Shown here in pieces: positions 2,599 to 57,184 of a DNA stretch of 64,000 nucleotides. Position 1 is the first letter of the stretch. Every line of letters starts with the position of its first letter. The notes under the pieces are model-generated. The model was not told the DNA's origin, ran no database searches, and worked only from the letters and a program-made list of their open reading frames with translations. A program made the translations under genes and the position numbers. This DNA is from Anaeramoeba ignava BMAN (Eukaryota; Protista; Anaeramoebae). The DNA is taken from NCBI GenBank assembly GCA_028826165.1, contig JAPDFW010000073.1, forward strand, positions 1-64,000, in the 5' to 3' direction.

Positions 2599-5500
2599 AT
2601 GGATTCACCAGTTGAAAATGATATAATTTTTAATGAAATTAATGATACAATTTTAAGAATTGAAAGGTTATCACAATCTTCAAAAATTTCTAAATCACAA
2701 GAAAGATCAGGACTTGTTAGACAAACACAACAATTAAAAGCAAAATTAGATAGTAATTTATAAATAAAAATTATAAATAAAATTATAAATAAAATTATAA
2801 ATAAAATTATAAATAAAATTATAAATAAAATTATAAATAAAATTATAAATAAAATTATAAATTAAATTATAAATAAAATTATAAATAAAATTATAAATAA
2901 AATTATAAATAAAATTATAAATAAAATTATAAATAAAATAAATAAAAAATTATAAAATAAAATTATAAATAAAATTATAAATAAATTATAAATTAAATTA
3001 TAAATAAAATTATAAATAAAATTATAAATAAAATTATAAATAAAATTATAAATAAAATTATAAATAAAATTATAAATAAAATTATAAATAAAAATTATAA
3101 ATAAAAATTATAAATAAAAATTATAAATAAAATTATAAATAAAATTATAAATAAAATTATAAATTAAAATTATAAATAAAATTATAAATAAAATTATAAA
3201 TAAATTATAAATTAAATTATAAATTAAATTATAAATTAAATTATAAATAAATTATAAATAAAATTATAAATAAAATTATAAATAAAATTATAAATAAAAT
3301 TATAAATAAAATTATAAATAAAATTATAAATAAAATTATAAATAAAATTATAAAATAAAAATTATAAAATAAATAAATAAAAATAAAATTATAAATAAAA
3401 TTATAAATAAAATTATAAATAAAATTATAAATAAAATTATAAATAAAATTATAAATTAAATTATAAATAAAATTATAAATAAAATTATAAATAAAATTAT
3501 AAATAAAATTATAAATTAAATTATAAATTAAATTATAAATAAAATTATAAATTAAATTATAAATAAAATTATAAATAAAATTATAAATAAAATTATAAAT
3601 AAAATTATAAATAAAATTATAAATTAAATTATAAATAAAATTATAAATAAAATTATAAATAAATAAAATATAAATAAAATTATAAATTAAATTATAAATA
3701 AAATTATAAATAAAAATATAAATAAAAGAATTATCAACTTTTCAATGGAACGCATACGCTCAAAAAATACCTACATTGAACATCATTCTCAGAACACTTT
3801 ATGATATTGAGAGTTTAGCAGCCCAATGGAACAAAGGAAAAAGCATACGACATGACGGGAAGAAAATCAACGATAAACAAATATGCGAGACATTCTTACA
3901 GCAACTAAAATATTACGAAGCAGAATTAAAACTAGAAAAGGATCCAGAAATTCAACTGATTGGGGATGATTTTGATATTATAACAGAAGAACAACTACAT
4001 TTAGAAGAAAAACAGAAACAAGAAAACCAACGGAGACTTGAGCTTCCAGTATTCACAGAGACAAAACTAGCTGATATTTACGAAACACCACGACCAAATG
4101 AAGTGAAAGTACATGTTGTAGATAAAAAATCACGTTCGAAGGATCACTACAACACGATCCGAGAAGCCATTATTGCCTCTGGCGTGGGAGACACAATCGA
4201 GATACGAGCAGGAGAATATCTCGAAAATATTATTATTGATCGACCAATCACTCTTCGCGGAGTTGGAGAAAACACAATTATTACTGCAAAAAAGGATCAC
4301 GTTGTCTCGATCATTACATATCAGGCAAAAATCTGTGATCTCAAAATACAAAAGCATTCCGAGGATAATATACCCGCAGTTAATATCTCCTACGGCGCTC
4401 CTGAAATTGATAATTGCACAATTTCCGTTACGGGACAAGCTCCAGGAATCCTGATACAAGGAGAATCAACTCCGACACTTGATACTGTTACAGTTAATGG
4501 TGGTACAACCACGGGAATTCTTATCAAAGATACTGCTGGCGGAAAAATCATTAATTCTTATATTAATAACGTCAATGGTGTTGGCATCGATATTTCAACT
4601 CCAACAGCCTTGACTATCGAAAACACAACCATATATAATAATAAATCATATGGACTGCTCATCCAAAATGAGGCTCATCCTACTATCAGAGGCTGCGCTG
4701 TTTCTGGAAACGAAAATGTTGGTGTCACAATAAAGGGAAAGTCAAATCCCCATTTTATTGAGTCTCGTATCTTCCAAATGAAAGCTGGTGGTGTTTGGAT
4801 TTTGGAACAATCTAATGGCAAGTTTGAGCGTTGTGAGATTTATGAAAATCGACTTTCTGGTTTGGAAATCAAGGATAGTTCCAACCCAACTTTCCAAGAA
4901 TGCAAAATTCGAAATGGAACTGGTGGTGGAATTTATATTCATACTTTTGGGAAAGGTCTTTTTAATCAATGTATTATTACTGAAAATGCACTTGCTGGAA
5001 TTTCTATTAAAGCAGGAGGAGATCCATTGTTTAAGAATTGTTTAATATTTAATGGGATTGCTGGAGGAATTTGGATTTATGATCGAGGTAAAAATATTAA
5101 AATATTAAATTATTAAATTAAAATATTAAAATAAAATATTTAATTAAATTAAAATAAAATATTTAAATTAAAATATTAAATTAAATTATTAAAATAAATT
5201 ATTAAATTAAATTAAAATATTAAATTAAAATATTAAATTAAAATATTAAATTAAAATATTAAAATATTAAATTTAAATTATTAAATTAAATTATTAAATT
5301 TAAATATTAAATTAAATTATTAAATTAAAATATTAAATTAAAATATTAAATTAAAATATTAAATTAAAATATTAAATTAAATTATTAAAATAAAATATTT
5401 AATTAAAATATTAAATTAAATTATTAAAATAAAATATTTAATTAATAAGGTCTTGGTACTTTCGAAGAAAATGAAATTGCAACTAATAATCTTGCTGGAA

Positions 5501-7282
5501 TAGAAATTCGTACAAATGCAAACCCTATATTTTCAAAAAATCAAATTCATAGTGGAAAAGCTGGTGGTATTTTTATTCATCAAAGTGGAAGAGGTGTTTT
5601 CGAACAAAATAGCATTTATAAAAACAATAATCTTGGAATTCTAATTAAAACTGGAGGAAATCCAACATTTTCGAATAATAAAATTTATGATAATCCAACT
5701 ATTGGTATTTCTATTATTGATCATGGTAAATTCAAAAATTATATTAAAAATTAAATTCAAAATTTAAATTCAAAATTAAATTTAAGAATTAAATTAAAAA
5801 TTAAATTAAAAATTAAATTCAAAATTATTCAAAAATTAAATTCAAAATTATTCAAAAATTTAAATTCAAAATTATATTTAAAATTAAATTCAAAAATTAA
5901 ATTCAAAATTATATTAAAAATTAAATTCAAAAATTAAATTCAAAATTAAATTCAAAAATTATATTCAAATTTTGTTTTGAAAATTAAATTTAAAATTATT
6001 CAAAATTTAAATCCAAAATTAAATTCAAAAATTATTCAAAATTATATTAAAAATTATTCAAAAATTAAATTCAAATTTTGTTTTGAAAATTAAATTTAAA
6101 ATTATTCAAAAATTAAATTCAAAATTATTAAAAATTTAAATTCAAAATTATATTAAAAATTTAAATTCAAAATTAAATTCAAAAATTAAATTCAAAATTA
6201 AATTCAAAATTATATTAAATTATATTCAAAATTATTAAAAAATTAAATTCAAAAATTAAATTCAAAATTAAATTCAAAATTATTCAAAATTATATTAAAA
6301 ATTATATTAAAAATTATTCAAAAAATTAAATTCAAAAATTCTTAAAGGCGCTGGTATTTTTAAACAAAATGAAATTTATGATAATAATCTTACTCAAATT
6401 GAAGTCCGTACATCAGGAGATCCTACATTCAAGAAAAACAAAATTTATAACGGAAAAGCAGCAGGAATAGTATTAATGGAAAGCACAAAAGGAACATTTA
6501 TCAAAAACGAAATTCACGACAATATTCTTTCAGGAATACAAATCAAATCATCATCAAGTCCAATAATAAAATGGAACAAAATATTTCAAAACAAAATATT
6601 TGGAGTTCATGCAACTGAGAGAGGACTTGGACTAATCGAGGGAAACGACATCTATGAGAACCAGATCAGTAACATTCAAATTGATGAGAATGCAAATCCA
6701 AATTTGGTTGGAAATAAAATTCACAACTCACAAGGCTCAGGAATATTGATTATTGAAAGAGGACTTGGACAAATTTTTGGAAATGATATTTATGAAAATA
6801 ATGGAGTTGGTGTTGGAATCAAATCAGAAGGTGATCCTTTAATCAAAGATTCAAAAATCCATAATCAACCAAACGGAGGAGGTATTTTTATTTATCAAAA
6901 TGGATTGGGAACATTTGAGAACTGCTATATTTACGAGAATAAACTTGCTGGGTTAGAAATCAAAGATGGATCAAATCCAACTTTTAAAAGTTGCAAATTT
7001 CAAGAACATTTGAATTCTGGTGCTATTTTTATTCATTCTAACGGAAGAGGTATTATTAAAGATTCAGAAATCACTAAGTGTAAACTTGTTGGTATTGAAA
7101 TCAAAACAGGTGCAAATCCTTCTATACTTAGAAGCAAAATTTCTCAAACTAAATGTGGTATTTGGATTCATCAAAACGGAAGAGGTATTATTAAGAATAA
7201 TGAATTATTTGAAAATGAAGATAACAATATGGTTATTGATGATAATTGTCGACCTGATTCTTCTGATAATACTTTCAAATAA
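2599..7282 (+). CDS. Right-handed parallel beta-helix (PbH1/CASH) repeat protein, FBXO11-like, no F-box seen
   Basis: Exons about 2599-2753, 3730-5087, 5450-5725, 6348-7282 join in frame; TI.EAI...G.Y.E motif followed by many N.I..N..AG(I/L)EI...(S/G)(N/D)P and G..GG(I/V)(F/W)I...G.G repeats. Confidence 0.85.
2757..3725. repeat. 12-bp (ataaataaaatt)n intronic array
   Basis: Near-perfect tandem repeat filling intron 1 of the beta-helix gene. Confidence 0.95.
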
Positions 7283-33992: not shown

Positions 33993-36862
33993 TTAATTTT
34001 TTTGATAAAAGATATTTTTTGGAGTTGATCTAAGGAGTTGATTATATTTTTCTTCATCAAAATAAGAAACAATACATAATCTTGAACAAAAAACTTTTCC
34101 AGCTAATCCAACTTCTGCTTTTTCTGCAGAATTTTGATCTTCGAATTTAATTAAAATTTTTGAAAGATTCATTTCAATTTCTTTTTCAATTTGATTTTGA
34201 TTTTGATTTTCAATTTCAATTTGATTTTGATTTTGAATTTGATTTTGAATTTGATTTTGAGTTTGATTTTGATTTTCATTTTGATTTTCATTTTGATTTC
34301 GATTTTGATTTTGATTTTGATTTTGATTTTCAATTTCAATTTCATTTTGATTTTGATTTCGATTTTGATTTTCAATTTCATTTTGATTTTGAACTTGAAT
34401 TTGATTTTCAATTTCATTTTGATTTTGATTTTGATTTTCAATTTGATTTTGATTTTGATTTTCATTTTCAATTTCATTTTCAATTTGATTTTGATTTTCA
34501 TTTTCAATTTCATTTTGATTTTCATTTTGATTTTGATTTTGATTTTGATTTTGATTTTCATTTTCAATTTCAATTTGATTTTGATTTTCATTTTCAATTT
34601 GATTTTCAATTTGATTTTCAATTTCATTTTGATTTTCAATTTGAATTTCAATTTGATTTTCAATTTGATTTTCATTTTGATTTTCAATTTTATTTTCAAT
34701 TTCATTTTCATTTTCATTTTGATTTTGATTTTCAATTTCATTTTGATTTTCAATTTCATTTTGATTTTCAATTTCATTTTGATTTTCATTTTGATTTTGA
34801 TTTTGAATTTCATTTTGATTTTGATTTTGAATTTGATTTTGATTTTGATTTTGATTTTGATTTTCAATTTGATTTTGATTTTGATTTTCATTTTGATTTT
34901 GATTTTGATTTTGATTTTGATTTTCAATTTCAATTTCATTTTGATTTTGAATTTGATTTTCATTTTGATTTTCAATTTGATTTTCAATTTGATTTTCATT
35001 TTGATTTTCATTTTGATTTTCAATTTTATTTTGATTTCCAATTTTATTTTTATTATTTTTATTATTTTTATTATTTTTATTATTTTTATTTTTATTTTCT
35101 AAACTAATTTGTTGGATTGTTATTGATTGAACTTCTCCAAATTCCGAACATTTAAGTTTAATATTTTCCATCATCTTAAGAAATAATTTTGAATTATGAA
35201 CCATTTTTGGATTTAAAATATTCATTAAACAAATTATTCTACTTTTAAAAATACCAGGAAGTGATTGTTCTTCATCAACTAATTCCATTTTTCCAAATGA
35301 AATTTCAAAATCGAATATTTTTTCTATACTAAGTTCATCAAAAATTTGTTGTGGAATAATAGATTTAACAATAGGATCTTTTGGAAAAAATCCATGTGAT
35401 TGAATTGGTGCTTCTATATTTGATTGATTATATAGTTGTGTTTGTTGTGCAATTCGGTTGATAACTTCTGAAAAACCATGATTCTTTTTTTTTTTTTTTT
35501 TGATTTAAAATTGATTTAAATTATTTTTAAAATTGATTCAAAATTTACACTTCTAATTCTTGTATTGGCTTTACGAACTACTAACTCTTTTCCTTCTAAT
35601 TCTTGACCATTCAAACTTGTACAAATTTTATCAATATTTTCAGGATCAACAAATTCAAAAAATCCAAAACCACGATAAGAGTTAGTCTTTGTATTAACAA
35701 CCAAAGCCAAAGATTTAACGTTTCCATAAGGCAAAATTAATTTTCTTGCTTCCTCTTCAGACCAAGTTAAAGGTAACCCTCCAATAAAAACTAAACCAGG
35801 AAAATCATCCTTCAAAATATTAATATCAATTTGCGGTTCTGGATTTGGATCCGGAACATAATACGAAGGACGAGATATTTTCAAAGGAAATCCATTATAT
35901 TGGATTCCATCAAGTTTTAAAGAGTCTGTTGCCAATTTCTTTGTTTTGAAAGTGATAAATGAAAATTTTTTGTGGAGATTAATATAAAGTTTATCAATGC
36001 AAGTGTCTGCTCTTTCCACTCCAAGTGATTTCAATGTTTTTATAAACAAATCCTTTAGTTCTTGGTATTGAGTATTTGGTGGGATATTTCCAATATATAT
36101 TTGATAAGGTGCGAGTTGTTTTTCATCAAGTAGTCTCAATGATTTTTGTTTTGGAATAAATTCAGAAATTGGTAAATTGCCAATATTATTGCTGATGTTT
36201 TTTTGCTGATCCAAATTATTATTTATGCTTTTTTGCTGATCCAAATTATTATTTATGTTTTTTTGCTGATTCAAATTCATTTGATTTTGAGCAAATCCTG
36301 AAAATTGAGAATTTTTTTGTAAATTATTCATTGCTTTAACAGCTCCATGAAAGTTAAATATTGGATTTGGAAAAAGTATTGGTGCTTTTGGCTGAGCATT
36401 TATCATTGCAGCAATTTCTTGTGCTTTTTGAAGCGGATTTAGCGTGGATTTTGTATCCCATCCACCTGATTCTTTAAACCCAGTTTTGCGGAATTTTTCT
36501 AAATGACTGAGATAATTTTGCTCTTCTTTTTTATTTGTTTTAATTTCCAAAACTTCGCGATTTTCAAATTTTTCTTGATTTTGGTTTGATTTTCTTCTTC
36601 TATTTATTGGACTTTGTGAACGTGAATGTGAATGTGAATGTGAAGTTGATTTTGAATCCGAATCTGAATAGGAGCTTGTATTTGAATAAGATTCGGTGTT
36701 TCTTGAATGGTGATGTTTATGACTGTGATGTTTGTGATGATGTCGAGATCGTTTTTCTTGATGTTTACTGTGTTTGTGGTGCTTATAATGATGTGTGTGT
36801 TGCTCTTTGCGTTTGTGATGATTGTGTCGATGATTGTGTTGATTTCTATCAATATAACTCAT
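33993..36862 (-). CDS. U2AF2: Splicing factor U2AF large subunit (RRM1, RRM2, UHM)
   Basis: ULM-like GGWD; RRM1 IYIGNIP...KKFSFITF...LDGIQYNGFPLKISRPSYY; RRM2 VFIGGLP...YRGFGFFEF...LNGQEL..KELVVRKA; UHM IICLMNIL...CSEFGEVQSI...LAGKVFCSRLCIVSYFDEEKY. Confidence 0.9.
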
Positions 36863-37099: not shown

Positions 37100-40000
37100 A
37101 TGATTTCAATTGAAAATATTTTATCATCAATTTCTAACCAAAACAGATTCTCTGCTCATATTTCAACTGATAAACAACTTTACCAACCTGGTGAATATAT
37201 ATTTATCAAAATTGTTCTTTTAAATGCTTTAACAAATGAACCTATAATTGAGAATAATTTATTTTCTCAAATTTCAAATCCTGTTTTACAAATTATTGAT
37301 TCTAAAAATGATGTTTATGAAAAAATCCAAGAATTAAAATTAGAAGATAGTATTTATTCTTATTGTTGGAATATACCTGATTCAATTCTTTTTGGAAAAT
37401 ACACAATTTTGTTTTCTTTTGATTTTTCTAATTCAACTTATTCATTTCAAAGAGACGTAGAAATCCGAAGTTTTGTTTATCCAAGATTAAATAAAAATAT
37501 TCACTTTATGAGACAAGGATATTCACCAAATCAAGAAGTTGAAGCAATTTTATCTGTTGAAAGAGTTGAAGGAAACAATTCTGACTTGCAAAAGATAAAT
37601 GTTAAATACTTTATCAAAGACGGACCCATTATACACAAGCAAATTATTGATAAACTCGATCATTTTGGAAGACTTTATTTAAATTTTAAATTACCTCCTA
37701 AAATTTCCTCTCAAATAGTTTTAAATTGCATTATAAGAGATGATCAAATCATAGAAAATATCTCCAAAATTGTTCCAACAAACATTTCAGATCTTAATAT
37801 CACTTTCTTTCCTGAAGGAGGTGATATAATTTATGGAATTAAATCAAGAGTTTATTTTCAATCAATCAATAGTGTTTATGATCCAGTTGATTTCCAAGGC
37901 CATTTGATATCTTCAGATTACGATGAAATCTTTGATGATGATAGATTACAAACAAAACATGAAGGAAGAGGTTTTTTTGAATTTACTCCACAAGAATCAA
38001 GTGTTTATTCATTAAAAATTGTTAATCCAACAGGAATCAAAAAAGAATTTCCTCTTCCTCAACCTCAAAAAAAAGGATTATCAATGAAAGTAATGAAAAG
38101 GGTATTTGATTATAATGAAGAAATTGAAATTGAAATCACTTCTTCATATCCGGGTGATTTTAAAGTTTGTTTATTCAAAAAAGAAGTTGAAATTGGGAAT
38201 CAATTCATCACAATTTCAAATGATCAAGTTTACAAACCAATAAAAAAGAAAATTTTACCAAAAAATAGCAAATGTCAACAAGGAATTATTAGAGTGACAA
38301 TTTATGAAATTCAAAATCAAAATCAAATTGAAAATCAAATTGAAAATCAAATTGAAAATCAAAATCAAAATCAAAATCAAAATCAAAATCATTTAATAAT
38401 GATCCCAATATCAGAAAGATTAACGTTTATCAAACCAAAAAGCCAAATCATTTACAAAATATCAACAAATAGAGAACAATTCAATCCAAGAGAAAAAGTT
38501 CAAATGAAAATAGAAACATTTGATGAAAATCAAAAACCTTTGGAAGCGATTTGTGGATTAACAATCACAGATAATTCAATTTATGAAATGAGTGATCCAA
38601 GAGAAAAACATCCAGATCTACTTTCAATGGCATATTTAGAAAAGGAAGTTTTTAGTCTGAAAGATCCTAATTGTTATCTCAATTTCAATAACGAAAAAAG
38701 CCAAAGTAAGTATTCATCTTTCATATTAAATAATATTTTTTTATATTTTTGATATTTATTTTTATTTCTATTTTTTTCTCTTAGTCAAACTTGATCTTCT
38801 ACTTGGAACTCAAGGATGGAGAAGATTTGTTTATTCAAAAAAAATCCCAAATCTTGATCCACAAAAAACAGAGAATTTCAAACAAACATTCGCATTATCT
38901 GATATTCTTGAATTCGAAATCGAATATTATCAACAGAAAATTGATCTTTTCTTCGTTTCTGGTACTCCATTAATCAAGATGAAAAACTTGATTGAAAGAA
39001 TACTTCAAATTCCAATTTCTTGTCAATATCTTATATACTCCACTTTCCATCTGAGTGATAATGAAAAATCAATTGGAGATTATATTCCTGATTTGAAAGC
39101 AATTCAAAACAGAAAAATTACTCTCCTTGACTCAAGAAAAGAAGGAGAATTATTATTCATCAAGTTGGAATCAGAGGAAAATGTTGAAGAACATTTGATT
39201 CACATTGGATATAATGAAGATGATAAAATTTCTTCAATCAAAAGCAAAATTGAAGAAAAAAAAGGAATATTAAAGGAAATGTCAACTTTATTTCTGGAAA
39301 ACCAAGAACTTATAGATGAAGAAAAAACATTAAAAGATTACTCTATTAAGCATGGAGATGTTTTATTTTGTTCTCGAAATAAAATAGCTGTTGAATTGAC
39401 TAATACTGATTTTGAGAAAAATCGGTTTTTTGTTGATCCAAAAAGTGAAGTTATTTCACTCAAAAATTTAATTTATAAAGAATTTCAAATTTCAGTTCAA
39501 GATCAGCATTTATTCTTCAAAGGAACCAAGATTTTGAATCACCAAATATTTCAAAAAGTTGGGATTCAAAATAATTCAAAGATAACTTTTTTCTCTTCAA
39601 GAAATGTGCCAATGAAAATTCAAGTTGAATATTTCGGAAAGAATTTTGAAGTTGATGTGTTTTCAAATGATACTTTCAAGGATTTAAAAAAAAAAATTCA
39701 AATACCAACAAAAATTCATGCAAACTCACAAATTTTAAGTTACAATAAAAGGAATCTTGACGATTATAGCACTTTCAGAGAACAATTTATTCCTACTAAT
39801 TCAACAGTTAACTTATTTTCTCGGAATGATTTTAGTAGAAAGCTAAAATTAGTGATTAAGAACAAAGAAGATGAGAACAAGAAATTGGAAATTGAAACAA
39901 CATATAGCAAAACTTTTGAAGAAATATCTGGGATTATTGAAGAAAAAGAAGGAATTGAACCAAACAAACAAAAAATTTTACTTGATGAAATAAATATCGC

Positions 40001-43000
40001 GAACAGAGATAAATCTTTATACGATTATTTCATTCGAGATGGAGAAGTGCTTTATTTGGAAGAAATGGATGAAAAATATTTTTTTGATGCTAAAATAATA
40101 ACAATTTCAGAAAAAATTTTATCCATTTCAGTTAAGTCTTCTGACACAGTTAATTATTTGAAAAAAAGAATTGAAAAGCTTATTCAAGTTCCTACTTACG
40201 AACAACTATTATTTTACAATAATAGACAAATAGAAATGCCTTCTGCGCCACTTGGTTTATATTCAATTTATAAACCAAAATCTGATGATGATCCTATTTT
40301 GATATTCATGGTCGATCCTCATACAAAAATTGGAGTTAATGTTTCGTTTCCTGAAGATACAAACCTTAAAATTTCCCAAACTGAATTTGAATGTGGACTT
40401 GGAATGTCAATTTATCGATTAAAAGCAAATATAATTGAAAAAAATGGAATATCTTCTCCAAATAAAAGACTTATTTTGAATTATTCTGGGATGCAATTTT
40501 CTGATGAAAGAATTATAGCTGATTATTTTAAAATGTTTAATAAAAATCCTTTAATGATAAATGCAGTAATGAGCGAAACTAAATATATTTATTTTTTTGT
40601 AAGACTACCCACTGGAAACACTATAACAATTGAAATGGAAGACAATTCAACAGTTCAAGATCTCAAATACAGAATATTCGAAAAAGTAGGTTTACCTGAA
40701 TCAAAATATACACTTCTCTATGCAGGAAGGCAAATGGATGATTGGAAAACTTTAGCTTATTATAAAATTCAAAAAGAATCCACACTTACTGCATGTATTA
40801 GATTGATTGGTGGAGGTCCGAGTGATAAAAATCAATTATACAAGAATTTGGAAAATTTGGATCACAATTTTTCAGTCACAGAAGTTCCAAATGAAACAAA
40901 ACCACTCAAAACTAAAATTGAACCTTTTGCAAGAGTTTATGCACTTCAATTACCTTCAGAAACAGATGAAGAAACAGAAAGAAAAGAATTCAGAAGTACA
41001 ATTTATTGGAATCCAATCCTCAAAACCGAAATGGAGAAACAAAACCAAACAGAAAATGAGAATATTATTGATAGTAATATGCCAAGTAAAATGATTGAAT
41101 TTCAGACAAATGATTCAATCACTTCATTCCGAGTGATAATTGATGGATTCACTCATGATGGTATTATTGGAAGCTCTGATTTATTTGTTTTTCAATCATT
41201 AAAACCATTTTATATTGAAGCAAAACTTCCAAATGAAATTACTTTTGGTGATGAACTGAGATTCCCTGTTTATTTTTTTAATAATCTCCATAATCCTTTG
41301 AAAATACAATTAGATATTCAGAGTCAAAGTTTTGAATTGAAGAAAAAAAAAGAAAAGGTATTACTAATAAAGCCAAATGAGCGCTCTGTTAAAATGATTT
41401 CAGGAAAAGTTCTAAACAATTCAGAGTTACCTCCAAAAAGAGTTTTTATGCTAATCTCAGCAAAATGTGTTGATAACGCCTTTATTAAGGATTCTGTTTT
41501 GAAGGGATTAAATGTTAAAGTAAATGGATTTCCAGTAAATTTAACTTATCCAGGGATTATTATGGAAAAAATGGATTTCAAACAAAAAATCCAATTTTCT
41601 TCCATGATAAAAAACAGTCTGACTTGTTCTCTTAAATTTTATACTTCAATGAACATAATTTTGAAAGAATTGATTGAAACTTTATATGGGGGATCTTATG
41701 AGGGATTTGAGCAATTAGCAAGTGTTCTTTCCTTAATGATTCAAACACAAAAATACCTACAAATCGAGAAACAAGATTATGATTTGATGCAAAAAGTGAA
41801 TTCTTTTATTCAATCAGAGTATCAAAAATTGGTATTATTAGAAAAGGAAAAGGGAGGATTTGGATGGTTTGAGAAAGATACAATCGGAAATGAAGTATTG
41901 ACAGCAATGGGGATTCTAACATTTTATGAATTATCACAAATTATGCCATTTGATAATGAAATTATTAAAAGAAATTTAACTTGGTTGTTTTCACTTAAAG
42001 ATGAAAAAACAAAATCATTTGAAAGAAAAGAAAAACAATTAGTTCCATTTGGAGCAACTCCTCAACACATCACTGATGCTTATATTGTTTGGTGTTTATC
42101 ACAAACACAAATTGAAACAAACCAAATTTCAGATGTTTTGGAAAAACTATTTGAAGATGCACAAAAAAAATATTCAAAAGATCCCTATTTTATTGCTTTA
42201 GTTGCCCTATCGTTATTTAATATCAATGAACAAAAGAAATCATTTGAACTGAATGAAAAATTAGTGAATTTTCAAAACAAAAAAACAGGAGAAATTTCCG
42301 GTTCAAATACCTCAATTACTTCATCTCGTGGTTCGAATTTAGATATTGAAACAACATCTTTGGCTGTTTTAAGCTGGATAAACCAAGATAAATTTCAATC
42401 AAATACAGCCCGAGCATCTGAATGGATTTTCTCCAGATTTCCAGAAGTAAAATTTGGATCAACACAATCAACATCCTTAGCAGTAAGAGCTTTATTTAGT
42501 TATTCAGCAATGATCCAAACCCAAAAACCTCAAACTCACTATTTTATCCTTTGTTCTTTTGGGAAAATCAAGCAAAGAATTGGTGTTTCTAATCAACGAA
42601 CAAATGCACTTGAATATTGTTTTAATTCTGATCAATTAAATAAACTAACAAAAAAAACAGATTTATTCCAAATGCGTCTTGCAAAAGGAGAACCAATCAG
42701 ATTTTCTTTGGATTTACAATATTATTCAGAAAATCCACTTGATTCAAACAAATGCCCATTAAAAATGATAATGAATTTGGAAAAGAAAAAAATCACAATT
42801 GGAGAAACAACACAAATTCATGTTTCTATCCAAAATTTACTCCAAAAACAAATTGAAGAAATGATAGTTGTTGTGATTGGAATTCCAGGAGGAGTTGAAT
42901 TGAATATGGAACATTTACAAAATCTTATTAAAAATGGAGTTTTTTCTTCTTTTAAATTATTTGGATCAAGAGAAATTATTTTTTATTTGGAAGGTTTAAA

Positions 43001-43172
43001 TGAAAATCAAGAAATTCAATTTAATATTGAAATTATTGGAAATTTTGAAGGAATTTATAAATCTCCTCCTTCAAGAATTTATTTATATTATGGAGATGAA
43101 AATGATAAAAAATGGGTTTCATCTTATTCAATTATAATTCAAGAAATGAAAAAGGAATTTAAAAAGAATTAA
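37100..43172 (+). CDS. Alpha-2-macroglobulin-like protein with about 8 tandem ubiquitin-like domains in the bait region; no thioester Cys
   Basis: Exons 37100-38705 and 38785-43172 (79-nt GT-AG intron) join in frame. MG2 STDKQLYQPGE, FFPEGGD, LDLLLGTQGWRRF, then the UBL array, then RKEFRSTIYWNP, DSITSFRV, PFYIEAKLP...GD, TED-like GGFGWF/DIETTSLA/FGSTQST and a C-terminal receptor-binding-like domain (IGIPGG...SRIYLYY). Confidence 0.9.
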
Positions 43173-43703: not shown

Positions 43704-46700
43704 TTAAATTTGAAGTAATAAGAATAATTTTTCAATTAAATCTTCAAGCCAAATTGAATGAGGAAGTGATTGAATCCTTGTTTTTTTTTATAAAAACAAA
43801 AAAAATTAAAGAAAAAATTATTATTAAAAAAAATTAATTATTATTAAATTTAAAAATTTACCAATCTTGAGGAAGTTTATTAAAACCAATTTGACAACCT
43901 AATAAAGCACCAGAAACTGCTCCACTTTTTTATTTAAAAAAATTTAAAATTAAAAATTTAAAATTTAAAATTTAAAATTAATATTATTAAGATTTTATAC
44001 TTTGTATCTGCATCTCCAGCTTCAAAAACTAAATCAGTTAAAATTTGTTTGAAATCATCAGGTTCTTCAAATAATTTCAAAGATAAAATAGCACTTCCCA
44101 AGGCTTTAAAAGTAAAACCAATTTTTCCTTTTTCATCCAAATTTAAATCTGACCATTTTTCAGCAGAAATATAATATTTAAAAATCTTTTTATGATCTTC
44201 TGAAGATAATAAATTCAATGATTCCTGAGCAGCTAAATCAATGATTTGATTTAAATCAGTTTTTCCTTGAAGAATTTGAGCTATTATTAAAGTAACGCAG
44301 ACACTACTTGCATGACATCTTGGGTCTGCATGAGTTACTTTTGCTATTTTCACTGTATTTTCTATTACTGTTTTGTTTTCATAAAATAATGGAATTCCAA
44401 GTATTGATGTTCTCATAATTGCTCCATTTGAAGCGTTATCTTTTTTTCCTTTCCAAGCATCAAATGCACATTTATGTGGATTTGTTGTAAATTCTTCATT
44501 TAATAAAACAGTTCCGACTGTTGTTCCAATTCCTGTTCCTGAAGAATCACCTTTTTAATTTTATAAATAAATTTTTATCCGATTTTAATTTTAATTTTAA
44601 ATTTTAATTTTAATTTTTAATTTTAATTTTAATTTTAATTTTAATTTTGATTTCAATTTTATATTTTAATTTTAATTTTAATTTTAATTTTAATTTTAAT
44701 TTTAATTTTAATTTTAATTTTAATTTTAATTTTAATTTTAATTTTAATTTTAATTTTAATTTTAAATTTTAATTTTAATTTTTAATTTTAATTTTAATTT
44801 TAATTTTAATTTTAATTTTAATTTTTAATTTTTAATTTTAATTTTAATTTTTAATTTTAATTTTAATTTTAATTTTTAATTTTAATTTTAATTTTAATTT
44901 TAATTTTAATTTTAATTATTAATTTTTATTTTAATTTTTATTTTAATTTTAATTTTAATTTTAATTTTAAATTTAAATTTCAATTTTAATTTTAATTTTA
45001 ATTTTTAAAATCAAAAAATTTACCTAATTCTGGAAATCCAAATTGAGCCCAAGATAATAATTTTTTTGCAAAATCTTTTGGATCAACATCACCATAACAA
45101 TCAATTAAACTTTTCAAAATTAAAATCATTTGGTCACTATCATCAGTCCAATCACCAATAATCCAACGTTTACGATGACGATCTCGAATAAATTTATTAA
45201 AATTAATTAATTCATAATCATAATGTTGAGCAACATTTTTTTTTGTAAGAAATTCTGATGCAAGACCTATTGCATCACCTAAACAAGCTCCAAAAATTGT
45301 TCCCTTAATTTTATCTTTAAGTTCAGAAATTTCTAATGTAATTTTTTCTCTTGGAATTGCAATTTTGCTTTGTCTTCGTGCTGTTGGAATTGCAACTGGT
45401 TCTGAAATTTGAGTTATTTGGGTTGTTTTATTAGAATTAGAATCTATTTTTTCTTCAATTTGTTTTTCAGTTTGATTTTCATTTTGATTTTGATTTTGAT
45501 TTTGATTTTCCTTTTCCTTTTCCTTTTCATTTTGATTTTGATTTTCATTTTGATTTTCCTTTTCCTTTTCCTTTTCCTTTTCATTTTCATTTTCATTTTG
45601 ATTTTCATTTTCATTTTCATTTTGATTTTCATTTTGATTTTCATTTTTATTTTCATTATTTTCATTATTTTCATTATTTTCATTATTTTCATTATTTTCA
45701 TTTATATTTTGATTTTCATTATTTTCATTATTTTCATTTAAATTTTGATTTTCATTTAAATTTTCAATTGTAATCTGCTTATTTCCTCGAAATGATTGAA
45801 ATGAATTCATTGTAATAACTTTACTATCTCTTTTTTTTTCTACATGATCTTGAATAATTATTGAGTTTTCCCTCAATTCATGTTTTGGATTTATTTTTTT
45901 TTTGGGTTGAGAAACATCTGCAAATTTTGGTTTATTTTCTTCAATATTTCTTAATAATTTTTTCATTCCTAAATCAATAATTTTCTGTTCCTTTTGATTA
46001 AAAGGATTTCCATTCAAAAACAATCTTTTTAAGCTCAATCCTGATTCATATAAAGATTCAATAATTTCTGTTATTTTATTAAAACCCATTGAAAAATTTT
46101 CAAGTGAAGGAAAACGTAAGAAAATTTGTTTTTCTAATTTATCAATTAAATTTCCAGTTAAATCAAGGGTTTTTAATCTACGAAATGGTAACAAAAGTTG
46201 AATAGGAAATTCTACTAATTGATTATTGCGAATTCTTATTTCTTCTATTGTTTCTGCTAAAGAACTGATTTCTTTTGGTAATTCTTCTAAACCAAGTGAA
46301 TTTAATCTCAAAGTTTTTAATGAAGATAAATTTTCTGTTTCAATTTCTAATTTCATTCCTGTATTGAAACTTAAATCTAACCATTGTAAATGTTTTAATT
46401 GGAATATGCATCTAGGAGTTTCTGAAAATTTATTAAAAGCTAAATTTAATTCTAATAAATTGTTTTCCTATATTTTTTGAATTAAATTATATTTTTAAAA
46501 TAAATTATATTTTTGAATTAAATTATATTTTTAAAATAAATTATATTTTTGAATTAAATTATATTTTTAAAATAAATTATATTTTTGAATTAAATTATAT
46601 TTTTGAATTAAATTATATTTTTGAATTAAATTATATTTTTAAAATAAATTATATTTTTGAATTAAATTATATTTTTGAAATAAATTATATTTTTGAATTA

Positions 46701-54747: not shown

Positions 54748-57184
54748 ATGTCTTCAAATCATAAAATTAAAAAATTTAAAAAAAATAAATTTAAAATTCA
54801 AAATCAAAATCAAAATCAAAATCAAAATCAAATTGAAAATCAAAATCAAAATAAAAATCAAATTATTCCTCAATTAAAATTTTCTTTAAATTCAAATTTA
54901 CAAACTCAAATTCAATTATTCAAATATCAAATCACTTCCAAAAATTTAAAAGAAAAAAATCCAAAAATGATTCAATTTAAACAATTTGAAAATTCAATTC
55001 CAAAACAAGAAAAAGTATATTTAGAAAAAATTAATAAATCAATTGATTTAATTTTAAAAACAAACAGAGAAACTTATTCTTTACAAGAAATATTCAAAGT
55101 AACTTTATTTCTTTATTTGTAAAAAATAAATTAATTAATTATTCCTTTCTTCTTTTAAAAACAAAAATTATTTCAAGTTGAATCAATTAATTTCTAAAAT
55201 GCAAATTTTTTCTCAAATCAAAAAAAGAATTATTCAAAAAATCACACTTTATATTCAAACAGAAATGAATGAATTGATGAAAAACAAAGAAGAACCGAAA
55301 ATTTTCATACAAAAAATAAATACTTTCCATATAGATTTTAATCAAAAATTAATAAATCTTGAAAATGCATTTGGCAAATTTTATCAAACAAAAACAAATT
55401 CAAAACAATTCATTTCAATAGAAAAATTTGGAGATTATTTTCTTTCAAAATTAATTAGTGAATCCTCAACATTTTCAAAAAGAATAATTTCAGAATTTAT
55501 TGAATTTTTCAACCAAATTAGAAACCGAGAATTTCTTGATGAAAATCTAATTGAAAACATAATAAATCTATTCAACGAATCAAGCGAACTTCAAAAAGAA
55601 TTCCAAACAAAATTTATTGAGAAGACAAGAAATTTTTATTCATCCAGAATCCAAGAAAAAAAATTACAATTAAACATGATGGAATTCACAACTTTTATTG
55701 ATGATAAAATCAATGAAGAAATGGAAAGAATGCAAAAAATCAAAAGCAATGATGAGCAGTTCATTCGATTATTTGGACAAAATTTGCAAGAAATGTTTTT
55801 TTTGGAGAACAAACCACAACTTTTGGAGCAAGGATTCCAAAAAATGCTTGAAACAAGAAATATAAAACTGATTGCAATTTTATATTTGCTTTTCAAAAGA
55901 GCAAATTTAGCGATGGAATTATATAGAGATTTGGGGAAATATATCCAAAAAGTTGGAGAAAATATAATCAATTCAATTGAAAATAAAAAAATCATAATTG
56001 CAAGGATTATTGATTTGAAAGACTATTGCGAACAAATTTTAAATCAGTGCTTTGAAAGCACACAAGAATGCAAGAACGTTATTCATCAATCATTCCAACA
56101 TTTCCTGAATTTAAAAGAGGATTTGACACCTGAATTACTTGCGATGGAATTCCACAAAATTTTGCAGATACAACGCAAAGATTTTTTTGAGATTGAATTC
56201 GAACACAAAATTGACAAGCTCATTCAAATTGCAAATTGGATCAATGCAAAGGATATATTTGAAATTGTGTATCACAAATTACTTTCGAAAAGATTGCTGG
56301 AGAAAAAATCTTCATCTTTAAGAATGGAAAAATATGTCGTGAAAAAATTCTCAAGTAATTTTGAAACCAAAATTGTGCGTCAAATTGATTTGATGCTCAA
56401 CGACTTGGAATCATCAGAAGAAAACATGAAAACGTTCAAACAAAGAATAAAAAACGATGATTTCAAGTTCAAAACAAATATCAATATTCTAACACACAGT
56501 AACTGGCCTAATTTCAAGCCAGTCAAGCTCAAAATCCCAAAAGAATTTGGAAAAATACAAGATTCATTTCTGGATTTTTACTCCCAATTGCACAGCGGAA
56601 GAAAGCTTTTTTGGCATCATGGACTTAGCCAGTGCATTTTCCGCATAAATTTTGAATCATTCCAAAAAGAATTTATTGCCCAATTTCCTTTGGCTGTAAT
56701 TTTATTGCTTTATGAAAATGCAGACTGTTTGACTTTCCAAGAAATTCAAGATCAAACAGAAATTGAGGAGGAAGAATTAACTCAATTTTTGGCAACTCTT
56801 TGTTTTGGAAACGCGCGAATTTTGATCAAAGAACCTAATTCTCACAAAATCCAAAAAAGTGACAAATTTATTTTTAATAACAATTTTCAACATGATTTGT
56901 ACCGAATAAGAATATCTTCAATTCGAATAAAGAAAAATTTGGAAGAGAATAAAGAATTGAAAGAGAAAGTTATGAAAGAAAGAAATTATGTTATTGATGC
57001 TGCTGCTGTTCGAATTATGAAAGCAGAAAAAACTCTCACTCATGAAATGTTGATATCAAAAATTCTTAATCAAATTAAATTCCAAATCCAAGTTTCCTTT
57101 ATTGAAAAAAGAATCAAAAGTTTGATTGATCGTGAATTTATGATCAAAGATGAAAAAAATCCAAATCTTTATCATTATAATTAA
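54748..57184 (+). CDS. Cullin (divergent, possibly Cul4-like)
   Basis: KDIFEIVYHKLLSKRLL, ILTHSNWP, HSGRKLFW, neddylation domain IDAAAVRIMKAEK...IEKRIKSLIDREFM; one intron at about 55099-55177; YSLQEIF resembles the Cul4 N-terminus. Confidence 0.92.

Follow-up and report, generated by a model that had tools for sequence, protein, structure and literature searches.

The first 64,000 nucleotides of contig JAPDFW010000073.1 from the protist Anaeramoeba ignava BMAN, referred to below as the window, contain on the forward strand a two-exon gene for a protein of the α2-macroglobulin (A2M) superfamily in which an array of ubiquitin-like (UBL) units occupies the place of the protease bait region (Table 1). 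Joining the exons gives, by arithmetic, 1,997 residues; searches and fold predictions were run on the separate exons. In Pfam, the upstream open reading frame (ORF) matches MG2 (E 3e-11) and, weakly, A2M_BRD, and the downstream ORF matches seven ubiquitin stretches (E 5e-65), A2M, TED and A2M_recep (E 2e-6). The downstream frame is open without interruption from 38787 to 43172, and its translation holds both of the motifs that anchor the bait slot. The intron is excised exactly in contigs of runs X2 and X4, whose splicing is itself the evidence for RNA, and it is retained in the DNA run X1. One 4.8-kb contig joins 38398–38705 to 38785–42900, and because it crosses the junction the two ORFs belong to one transcript, as a preliminary description of this DNA had proposed. 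Two separate transcripts are ruled out by these spliced contigs, and an assembly chimera is ruled out by a single read-derived contig that covers both array and scaffold and by three paralogs with the same layout.

By its sequence, the predicted product is an A2M-superfamily scaffold that runs from MG2 to MG8 without MG1 or a signal peptide. Its N terminus enters MG2 directly and no hydrophobic leader is found (by hydropathy only); a divergently transcribed gene begins 238 nt upstream. Exon 1 is 30% identical, end to end, to a relative from A. flamelloides (P0004), whose AlphaFold model (predicted local distance difference test score, pLDDT, of 81) has helices at residues 541–582, the first of them at 541–552, then a disordered slot at 587–717, and is ordered again from an R-x-Y-x-H motif on. 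This model matches CD109, A2ML1, C3 and C5 over its whole length (Z ∼30), and several of its structure alignments start at MG2 of CD109 or A2M, at about residues 116–126 of those proteins. When human A2M is aligned to a profile of relatives without UBL units, the downstream anchor pairs with VRKYFPETWIW and GCFEQ with GCGEQ. The window protein has the LNK/bait insertion in MG6 that marks membership in the superfamily, ending at R-x-x-F-x-x-T-x-x-W (BR-C). In A2ML1, the MG2–MG3 motif YVLPKF lines the bait channel, and the conformational change begins when the Arg-to-Pro stretch of this anchor, the C-terminal plug of the bait, retracts (PMC9156758). Because the LNK helices and the BR-C plug flank the slot on both ends, the UBL array stands in for the disordered bait; profile and structure model agree on the two anchors between which the preliminary description had placed the ubiquitin units.

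The array is a folded UBL bait of eight ubiquitin-fold units and ∼635 residues. Eight units in the window slot are recovered by a local profile built from unit 8 of the four array-bearing genes. Canonical ubiquitin scores six of them at 11–60 bits, and 200 shuffled versions of the slot gave no score above 2.8 bits; the profile hits and this control rule out chance matches. AlphaFold gives the β-grasp order of strands and helix in all eight units (units 1 and 7 with low confidence), and Foldseek matches the array model to tetra-ubiquitin, the USP7 UBL array and ISG15. An ordinary polyubiquitin gene is ruled out by the mutual divergence of the units and by a GG end on unit 8 only. For units 1–7, no close donor was found elsewhere in the genome (best ∼30% identity). 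Unit 8 has the tail of a deubiquitinase (DUB) substrate, L-x-G-G with a residue other than Pro at P1′ (RLIGG then Gly), and in an allele of the window gene Arg72 is replaced by Lys with the glycines kept. Unit 8 of the window copy lacks Leu8, Ile44, His68, Val70, Arg42 and Arg74, with Pro, Leu, Thr, Cys, Thr and Ile in their places. The earlier count of about eight β-grasp units and the RLIGG end given for the last one are both borne out. The view of that unit as a ubiquitin mimic and DUB target stands only in part: the RLIGG end is present, but identity to ubiquitin is 35/76 and the Ile44 patch, Arg42 and Arg74 are lost.

The thioester site of the window copy is dismantled. Positions 41688–41714 read GGSYEGFEQ, with EGFEQ in place of GCFEQ. 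Ser and Gly stand where all 69 aligned relatives have Pro and Cys, the specificity column, which aligns with the catalytic His of CD109, holds Val where 53 of the 69 relatives have Asp and 14 have His, and the His of HEALT is Asn. The thioester Cys is kept in 265 of the 266 relatives that have the motif, and the three other array-bearing copies (C24, C59 and C70) keep GCFEQ together with Asp in the specificity column. Monomeric A2Ms trap via the thioester after bait cleavage and need it to inhibit (PMC9156758). Because the thioester is lost, the window copy is no covalent trap; Cys, the preceding Pro and the specificity residue are all replaced, which rules out the trapping suggested earlier in its covalent sense for this copy. 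The idea of a trap appears to fit C24, C59 and C70 better. With neither the C-x-E-Q motif, nor the His/Asp/Asn residue, nor a signal peptide, the window copy should, on these sequence grounds, not be classed as a thioester inhibitor.

The array is found in the window copy and in these three paralogs, which carry automatic database names such as polyubiquitin-like. A quick tree made without bootstrap unites the four genes in a single clade (SH-aLRT 100), in which the branch to the window copy is long (1.22). Unit order is constant across the four copies despite deep divergence; only the last unit has the L-x-G-G-G end in all four, and no inner unit ends in GG. Identity of unit 8 to ubiquitin falls from 63/76 in C70 and 48/76 in C24 to 35/76 in the window copy and 32/76 in C59, and the four copies are 20–64% identical to one another in this unit. 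Leu73, Gly75, Gly76 and the P1′ Gly are invariant in all four, among 13/76 invariant positions in total. Between C24, C59 and C70 the scaffold is 87–96% identical, unit 8 47–64% and the linker 42–53%, and the stretch from the diGly to BR-C is 33–53% identical among the paralogs. Judged by these comparisons, the variation of unit 8 and the linker is bait-like hypervariability. The ratio of nonsynonymous to synonymous substitution rates (dN/dS) is 0.5–1.2 in unit 8 with dS raised too, a pattern that we read as a mosaic or as fast turnover and that does not establish positive selection. All the residues of ubiquitin recognition that were checked are present in C70 unit 8, with a P1′ residue other than Pro, and the DNA of this unit is up to 85% identical to host ubiquitin genes, compared through search scores only, versus 80% and 73% to the paralogs. 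C59 unit 8 is NEDD8-like and ubiquitin-like equally, with Leu72. For MG6b–TED of the window gene, dN/dS is 0.4–0.65, and the gene is intact, spliced and, by these estimates, under constraint there. Frame faults are present in two paralogs: in C59 the frame is broken by one base within an A-run of UBL unit 1 (L046 ∼3005–3300), a break that the database model bridges, and in C70 the last codons are out of frame (L047 ∼7170–7220). These are either assembly errors or real lesions.

About 12 A2M-family genes of this kind are present in the genome, most of the others with low-complexity slots of 110–200 residues; in the family, slots range from 110 to 580 residues with varied content. One paralog (C116; L055 3600–5340, minus strand) has a Snf7/CHMP4-like bait over several exons, with the Snf7 match confirmed and GCFEQ kept. 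Scaffold relatives are the GCFEQ-type MG2 domain or A-macroglobulin complement component proteins of Planctomycetes, Bacteroidetes and protists (Protostelium, Flabellula, Physarum, Cantina and A. flamelloides), which are 25–35% identical to the window protein and have both slot anchors and the thioester motif. The family searches returned top lists rather than a census. The slots of 263 other members hold no UBL, and none appears in the Pfam annotations from another search, which took in four A. flamelloides copies, so that among the relatives listed, protists included, the combination is confined to the four A. ignava genes. CarboxypepD_reg or TonB-plug domains occupy this slot in bacterial members and give a precedent for folded cargo. 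The ESM Atlas returned generic A2M clusters only, and a joint search with ubiquitin and scaffold returned mainly polyubiquitins and was uninformative. P0242, P0244, P0249, P0284 and P0288 are GCFEQ-type proteins of Protostelium, Physarum, Flabellula and Cantina, and P0242 and P0284, whose N termini are complete, have no hydrophobic leader. We regard the protist GCFEQ-type macroglobulins, as predicted proteins, as an overlooked branch of the superfamily. Several Anaeramoeba members without UBL units (P0004, P0239, P0238 and L052/L053) start with MGN or MGQ, a possible N-myristoylation signal that would fit a cytosolic membrane location. A bacterial GCFEQ-type macroglobulin, P0017, is fused to a protein kinase domain.

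The divergently transcribed gene upstream, on the other side of the 238-nt interval, is a two-RRM, U2AF-like gene (35516–36862, minus strand). Downstream, the A2M gene is adjoined by an intron-split gene with leucine-rich repeats fused to an ADP-ribosylglycohydrolase domain (43958–46356, minus strand), and a cullin gene (55178–57184, plus strand) lies farther along the window. Many other divergent multi-UBL ORFs occur in the genome, at C59 369–376 kb, C70 305–307 kb, C87 123–125 kb and C56 495–506 kb, some of them <30 kb from A2M–UBL genes.

Table 1. Features of the A2M–UBL gene, in window coordinates
Feature	Position	Strand	Basis
Exon 1: MG2 to first half of MG6, without MG1 or signal peptide	37100–38705	+	Pfam, P0004 alignment, hydropathy
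FVYPRL, counterpart of MG2–MG3 motif YVLPKF	37472–37489	+	Family profile versus human A2M and CD109
Intron: 79 nt, phase 1, GT-AG	38706–38784	+	Spliced join 38705/38785 in X2 and X4
Exon 2: linker helix, UBL array, BR-C, MG6b–MG7, CUB/TED, MG8	38785–43172	+	Frame, Pfam
Conserved family motif LDLLLGTQGWRRF, first helix of LNK insert	38790–38828	+	P0004 model
UBL unit 1, weakest	38904–39119	+	Profile, AlphaFold
UBL unit 2	39153–39380	+	Profile, AlphaFold
UBL unit 3	39381–39599	+	Profile, AlphaFold
UBL unit 4	39609–39824	+	Profile, AlphaFold
UBL unit 5	39846–40064	+	Profile, AlphaFold
UBL unit 6	40086–40286	+	Profile, AlphaFold
UBL unit 7, divergent, low pLDDT	40356–40568	+	Profile, AlphaFold
UBL unit 8, 35/76 identical to ubiquitin, end RLIGG, Gly at P1′	40587–40814	+	
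Hypervariable linker, 35 residues, classical bait-region length	40815–40919	+	Paralog comparison
EPFARVYA, family R-x-Y/F-x-H motif with His to Leu in the window copy	40920–40943	+	
RKEFRSTIYWNP, BR-C plug and MG6b start, equals human A2M VRKYFPETWIW	40980–41015	+	Family profile
TED, thioester site dismantled	41667–42503	+	Pfam, family alignment
MG8/receptor-binding-like domain	42858–43112	+	Pfam A2M_recep E 2e-6

The reading that we favor, with a probability of about 0.4, is that the four genes encode a clade of signal-less, probably cytosolic A2M proteins in which a captured UBL array replaced the disordered bait and provides a diGly-triggered switch, the window copy being non-covalent. In its favor, the bait position is fixed at both ends of the slot, Leu73, the two glycines and the P1′ Gly do not vary, unit 8 and the linker show bait-like variation, with unit 8 ranging from near-ubiquitin to NEDD8-like, relatives keep GCFEQ and the Asp/His column, a paralog has Snf7 in the slot, and the window gene is intact. 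The folded array sits between the LNK helices and the BR-C plug, and the last unit, which alone keeps L-x-G-G and varies strongly by copy, may be bound by a DUB or UBL protease that cuts after the diGly. By analogy with A2ML1, A2M and C3, the cut would remove a folded stopper, as with the loss of ANA in C3, so that BR-C and the 55-residue tail could retract and the scaffold rearrange. In C24, C59 and C70 an exposed Cys-Gln thioester, predicted to prefer amines because the specificity site is Asp, would then bond a lysine of the enzyme or of a nearby protein, and each copy would owe its set of triggering enzymes to its own unit-8 sequence. The window copy would be a C5-like non-covalent switch or a decoy, cut only by a promiscuous protease that reads the tail. 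The mechanism put forward in the preliminary description is supported in part, by the single gene, the bait position, the β-grasp folds, the missing signal peptide and a diGly kept, in all four copies, at the end of the last unit alone; covalent trapping by the window copy is not supported.

Several points weigh against a diGly-triggered switch. Ubiquitin placed inside a fusion is cut by host DUBs during translation (PMC3692480), so that C70 would be sprung in advance, and lengthening the human A2M bait by 5–20 residues blocks native folding (PMC9352918). The diGly cut site lies 55 residues ahead of the BR-C Arg, farther than in classical baits. For GCFEQ-type proteins, no cleavage, thioester, trapping or solved structure was found reported in the literature searched. 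Positive selection on unit 8 is not supported, the raised dS fitting mosaic replacement or homogenisation of the scaffold, and the probably cytosolic location of the window protein is read from the missing signal peptide.

That such a trap is aimed at a pathogen is pure conjecture on our part. Two observations serve as context and not as evidence for a target: long ORFs at eight loci of the genome encode RZ-type zinc fingers (at least eight genes; an RNF213/ZNFX1-like immune ligase module), and a Legionellales symbiont lives in a related species (10.64898/2026.04.11.717937). Since an internal ubiquitin that is close to authentic should be a substrate of housekeeping DUBs, host processing rivals a pathogen trap. 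A broader scheme, which we think somewhat unlikely, is an intracellular complement-like surveillance family whose slots would hold copies of host proteins that microbes attack (diversified ubiquitin/NEDD8-like units, Snf7) and which would covalently trap or report foreign DUBs and effectors, with the window copy as a non-covalent decoy or regulator.

The linker matches a bait in length and varies more than any other part, seven of the eight units lack the diGly, and the window unit 8 is without DUB-recognition residues. These features would also suit an array that acts as a lure in front of a classical bait, the trigger being an ordinary protease cut in the 35-residue linker. The array would then provide avidity for ubiquitin-binding proteins (proteasome receptors, E3s or effectors) or localise the protein, in keeping with the fold match to USP7, whose kind of tandem, non-cleavable UBL array is an interaction platform, and the window copy would be a pure binding decoy or adaptor. 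We consider this rather doubtful, since it leaves unexplained why L-x-G-G stands at the exact ubiquitin C-terminal position in all four copies amid the divergence of unit 8.

Constitutive cutting by a host DUB, for maturation or release as in ubiquitin-fusion precursors or with furin on C3, seems unlikely. It would yield two chains or a freed thioester half, and the N-terminal chain would end in a free ubiquitin C terminus that E1 could activate and conjugate. The recognition residues and non-Pro P1′ of C70, its DNA nearer to host ubiquitin genes than to the paralogs, and the cotranslational cleavage known for internal ubiquitin (PMC3692480) all accord with such processing. However, three of the four copies have drifted from host ubiquitin (32–48/76), which is hard to square with efficient host processing, and a cotranslational cut made before the C-terminal half exists would probably block a native thioester. 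It is quite improbable that a polyubiquitin-like capture is simply tolerated in a permissive slot and that the window copy is decaying towards a pseudogene: the genome is rich in divergent UBL arrays (at least 150 ubiquitin-family matches), the slot accepts 110–580 residues of varied content and the long-branched window copy has lost catalytic residues, but its 1,997-codon frame is intact and spliced, unit order, folds and diGly are kept, and dN/dS is mostly <1.

The architecture is a real, undescribed variant of the A2M superfamily, of interest chiefly for the clade as a whole. In agreement with the earlier claim of novelty, no paper was found on a macroglobulin with a ubiquitin bait or a deubiquitinase, and the Anaeramoeba papers found mention neither macroglobulin nor ubiquitin. 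Known A2M and complement proteins are extracellular or periplasmic. An A2M without signal peptide that is triggered by a ubiquitin diGly would, if the switch is real, link thioester chemistry to the intracellular ubiquitin system and amount to a natural activity-based DUB probe that is genetically encoded. The Snf7-bait paralog and the UBL clade together suggest that the bait slot is an integrated-decoy cassette, in a protist living with bacterial symbionts. Through the clade it also becomes possible to test directly, for the first time, whether the widespread GCFEQ-type macroglobulins are cleavage-triggered, and in the window copy the clade has a natural thioester-negative counterpart of C70 and C24.

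Plant NLRs carry integrated decoy domains in sensors, and the A. ignava proteins resemble them, by analogy only, in placing host target domains (ubiquitin, Snf7) in a sensor scaffold; the scaffold is unrelated. The CAGE complex, described as a distinct fold (10.1101/2025.09.22.677704), had no entry among the listed PDB matches. Polyubiquitin, Ub-eS31, FUBI-eS30 and pro-ISG15 are alike in joining a UBL, a diGly and a downstream chain, whereas the inner units of the array have no diGly, so that they are not releasable, and the array lies inside a larger fold. Bacterial A2Ms (E. coli ECAM/YfhM, Salmonella) share the monomeric thioester snap-trap logic but are more distant (E 1e-21) and are periplasmic lipoproteins with short baits. 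In C3/C4, a folded ANA domain at the bait position stands before the retracting peptide as the UBL array stands before BR-C, and C5 works without a thioester (PMC9156758); the window module is instead ubiquitin-like, in an apparently intracellular protein without a C345C domain. A2ML1, CD109 and human A2M share MG2–MG8, the LNK/bait in MG6, BR-C and CUB-TED (profile E 1e-59 to 1e-66). Unlike them, the window protein has no MG1 or signal peptide, its bait is ∼635 residues of folded UBLs and its motif is Cys-less, and C24, C59 and C70 have GCFEQ where human A2M has GCGEQ. The GCFEQ-type relatives are direct family, with the same slot anchors and the thioester motif, and differ in what the slot holds, which is low-complexity sequence or CarboxypepD_reg/TonB-plug domains in place of ubiquitin folds.

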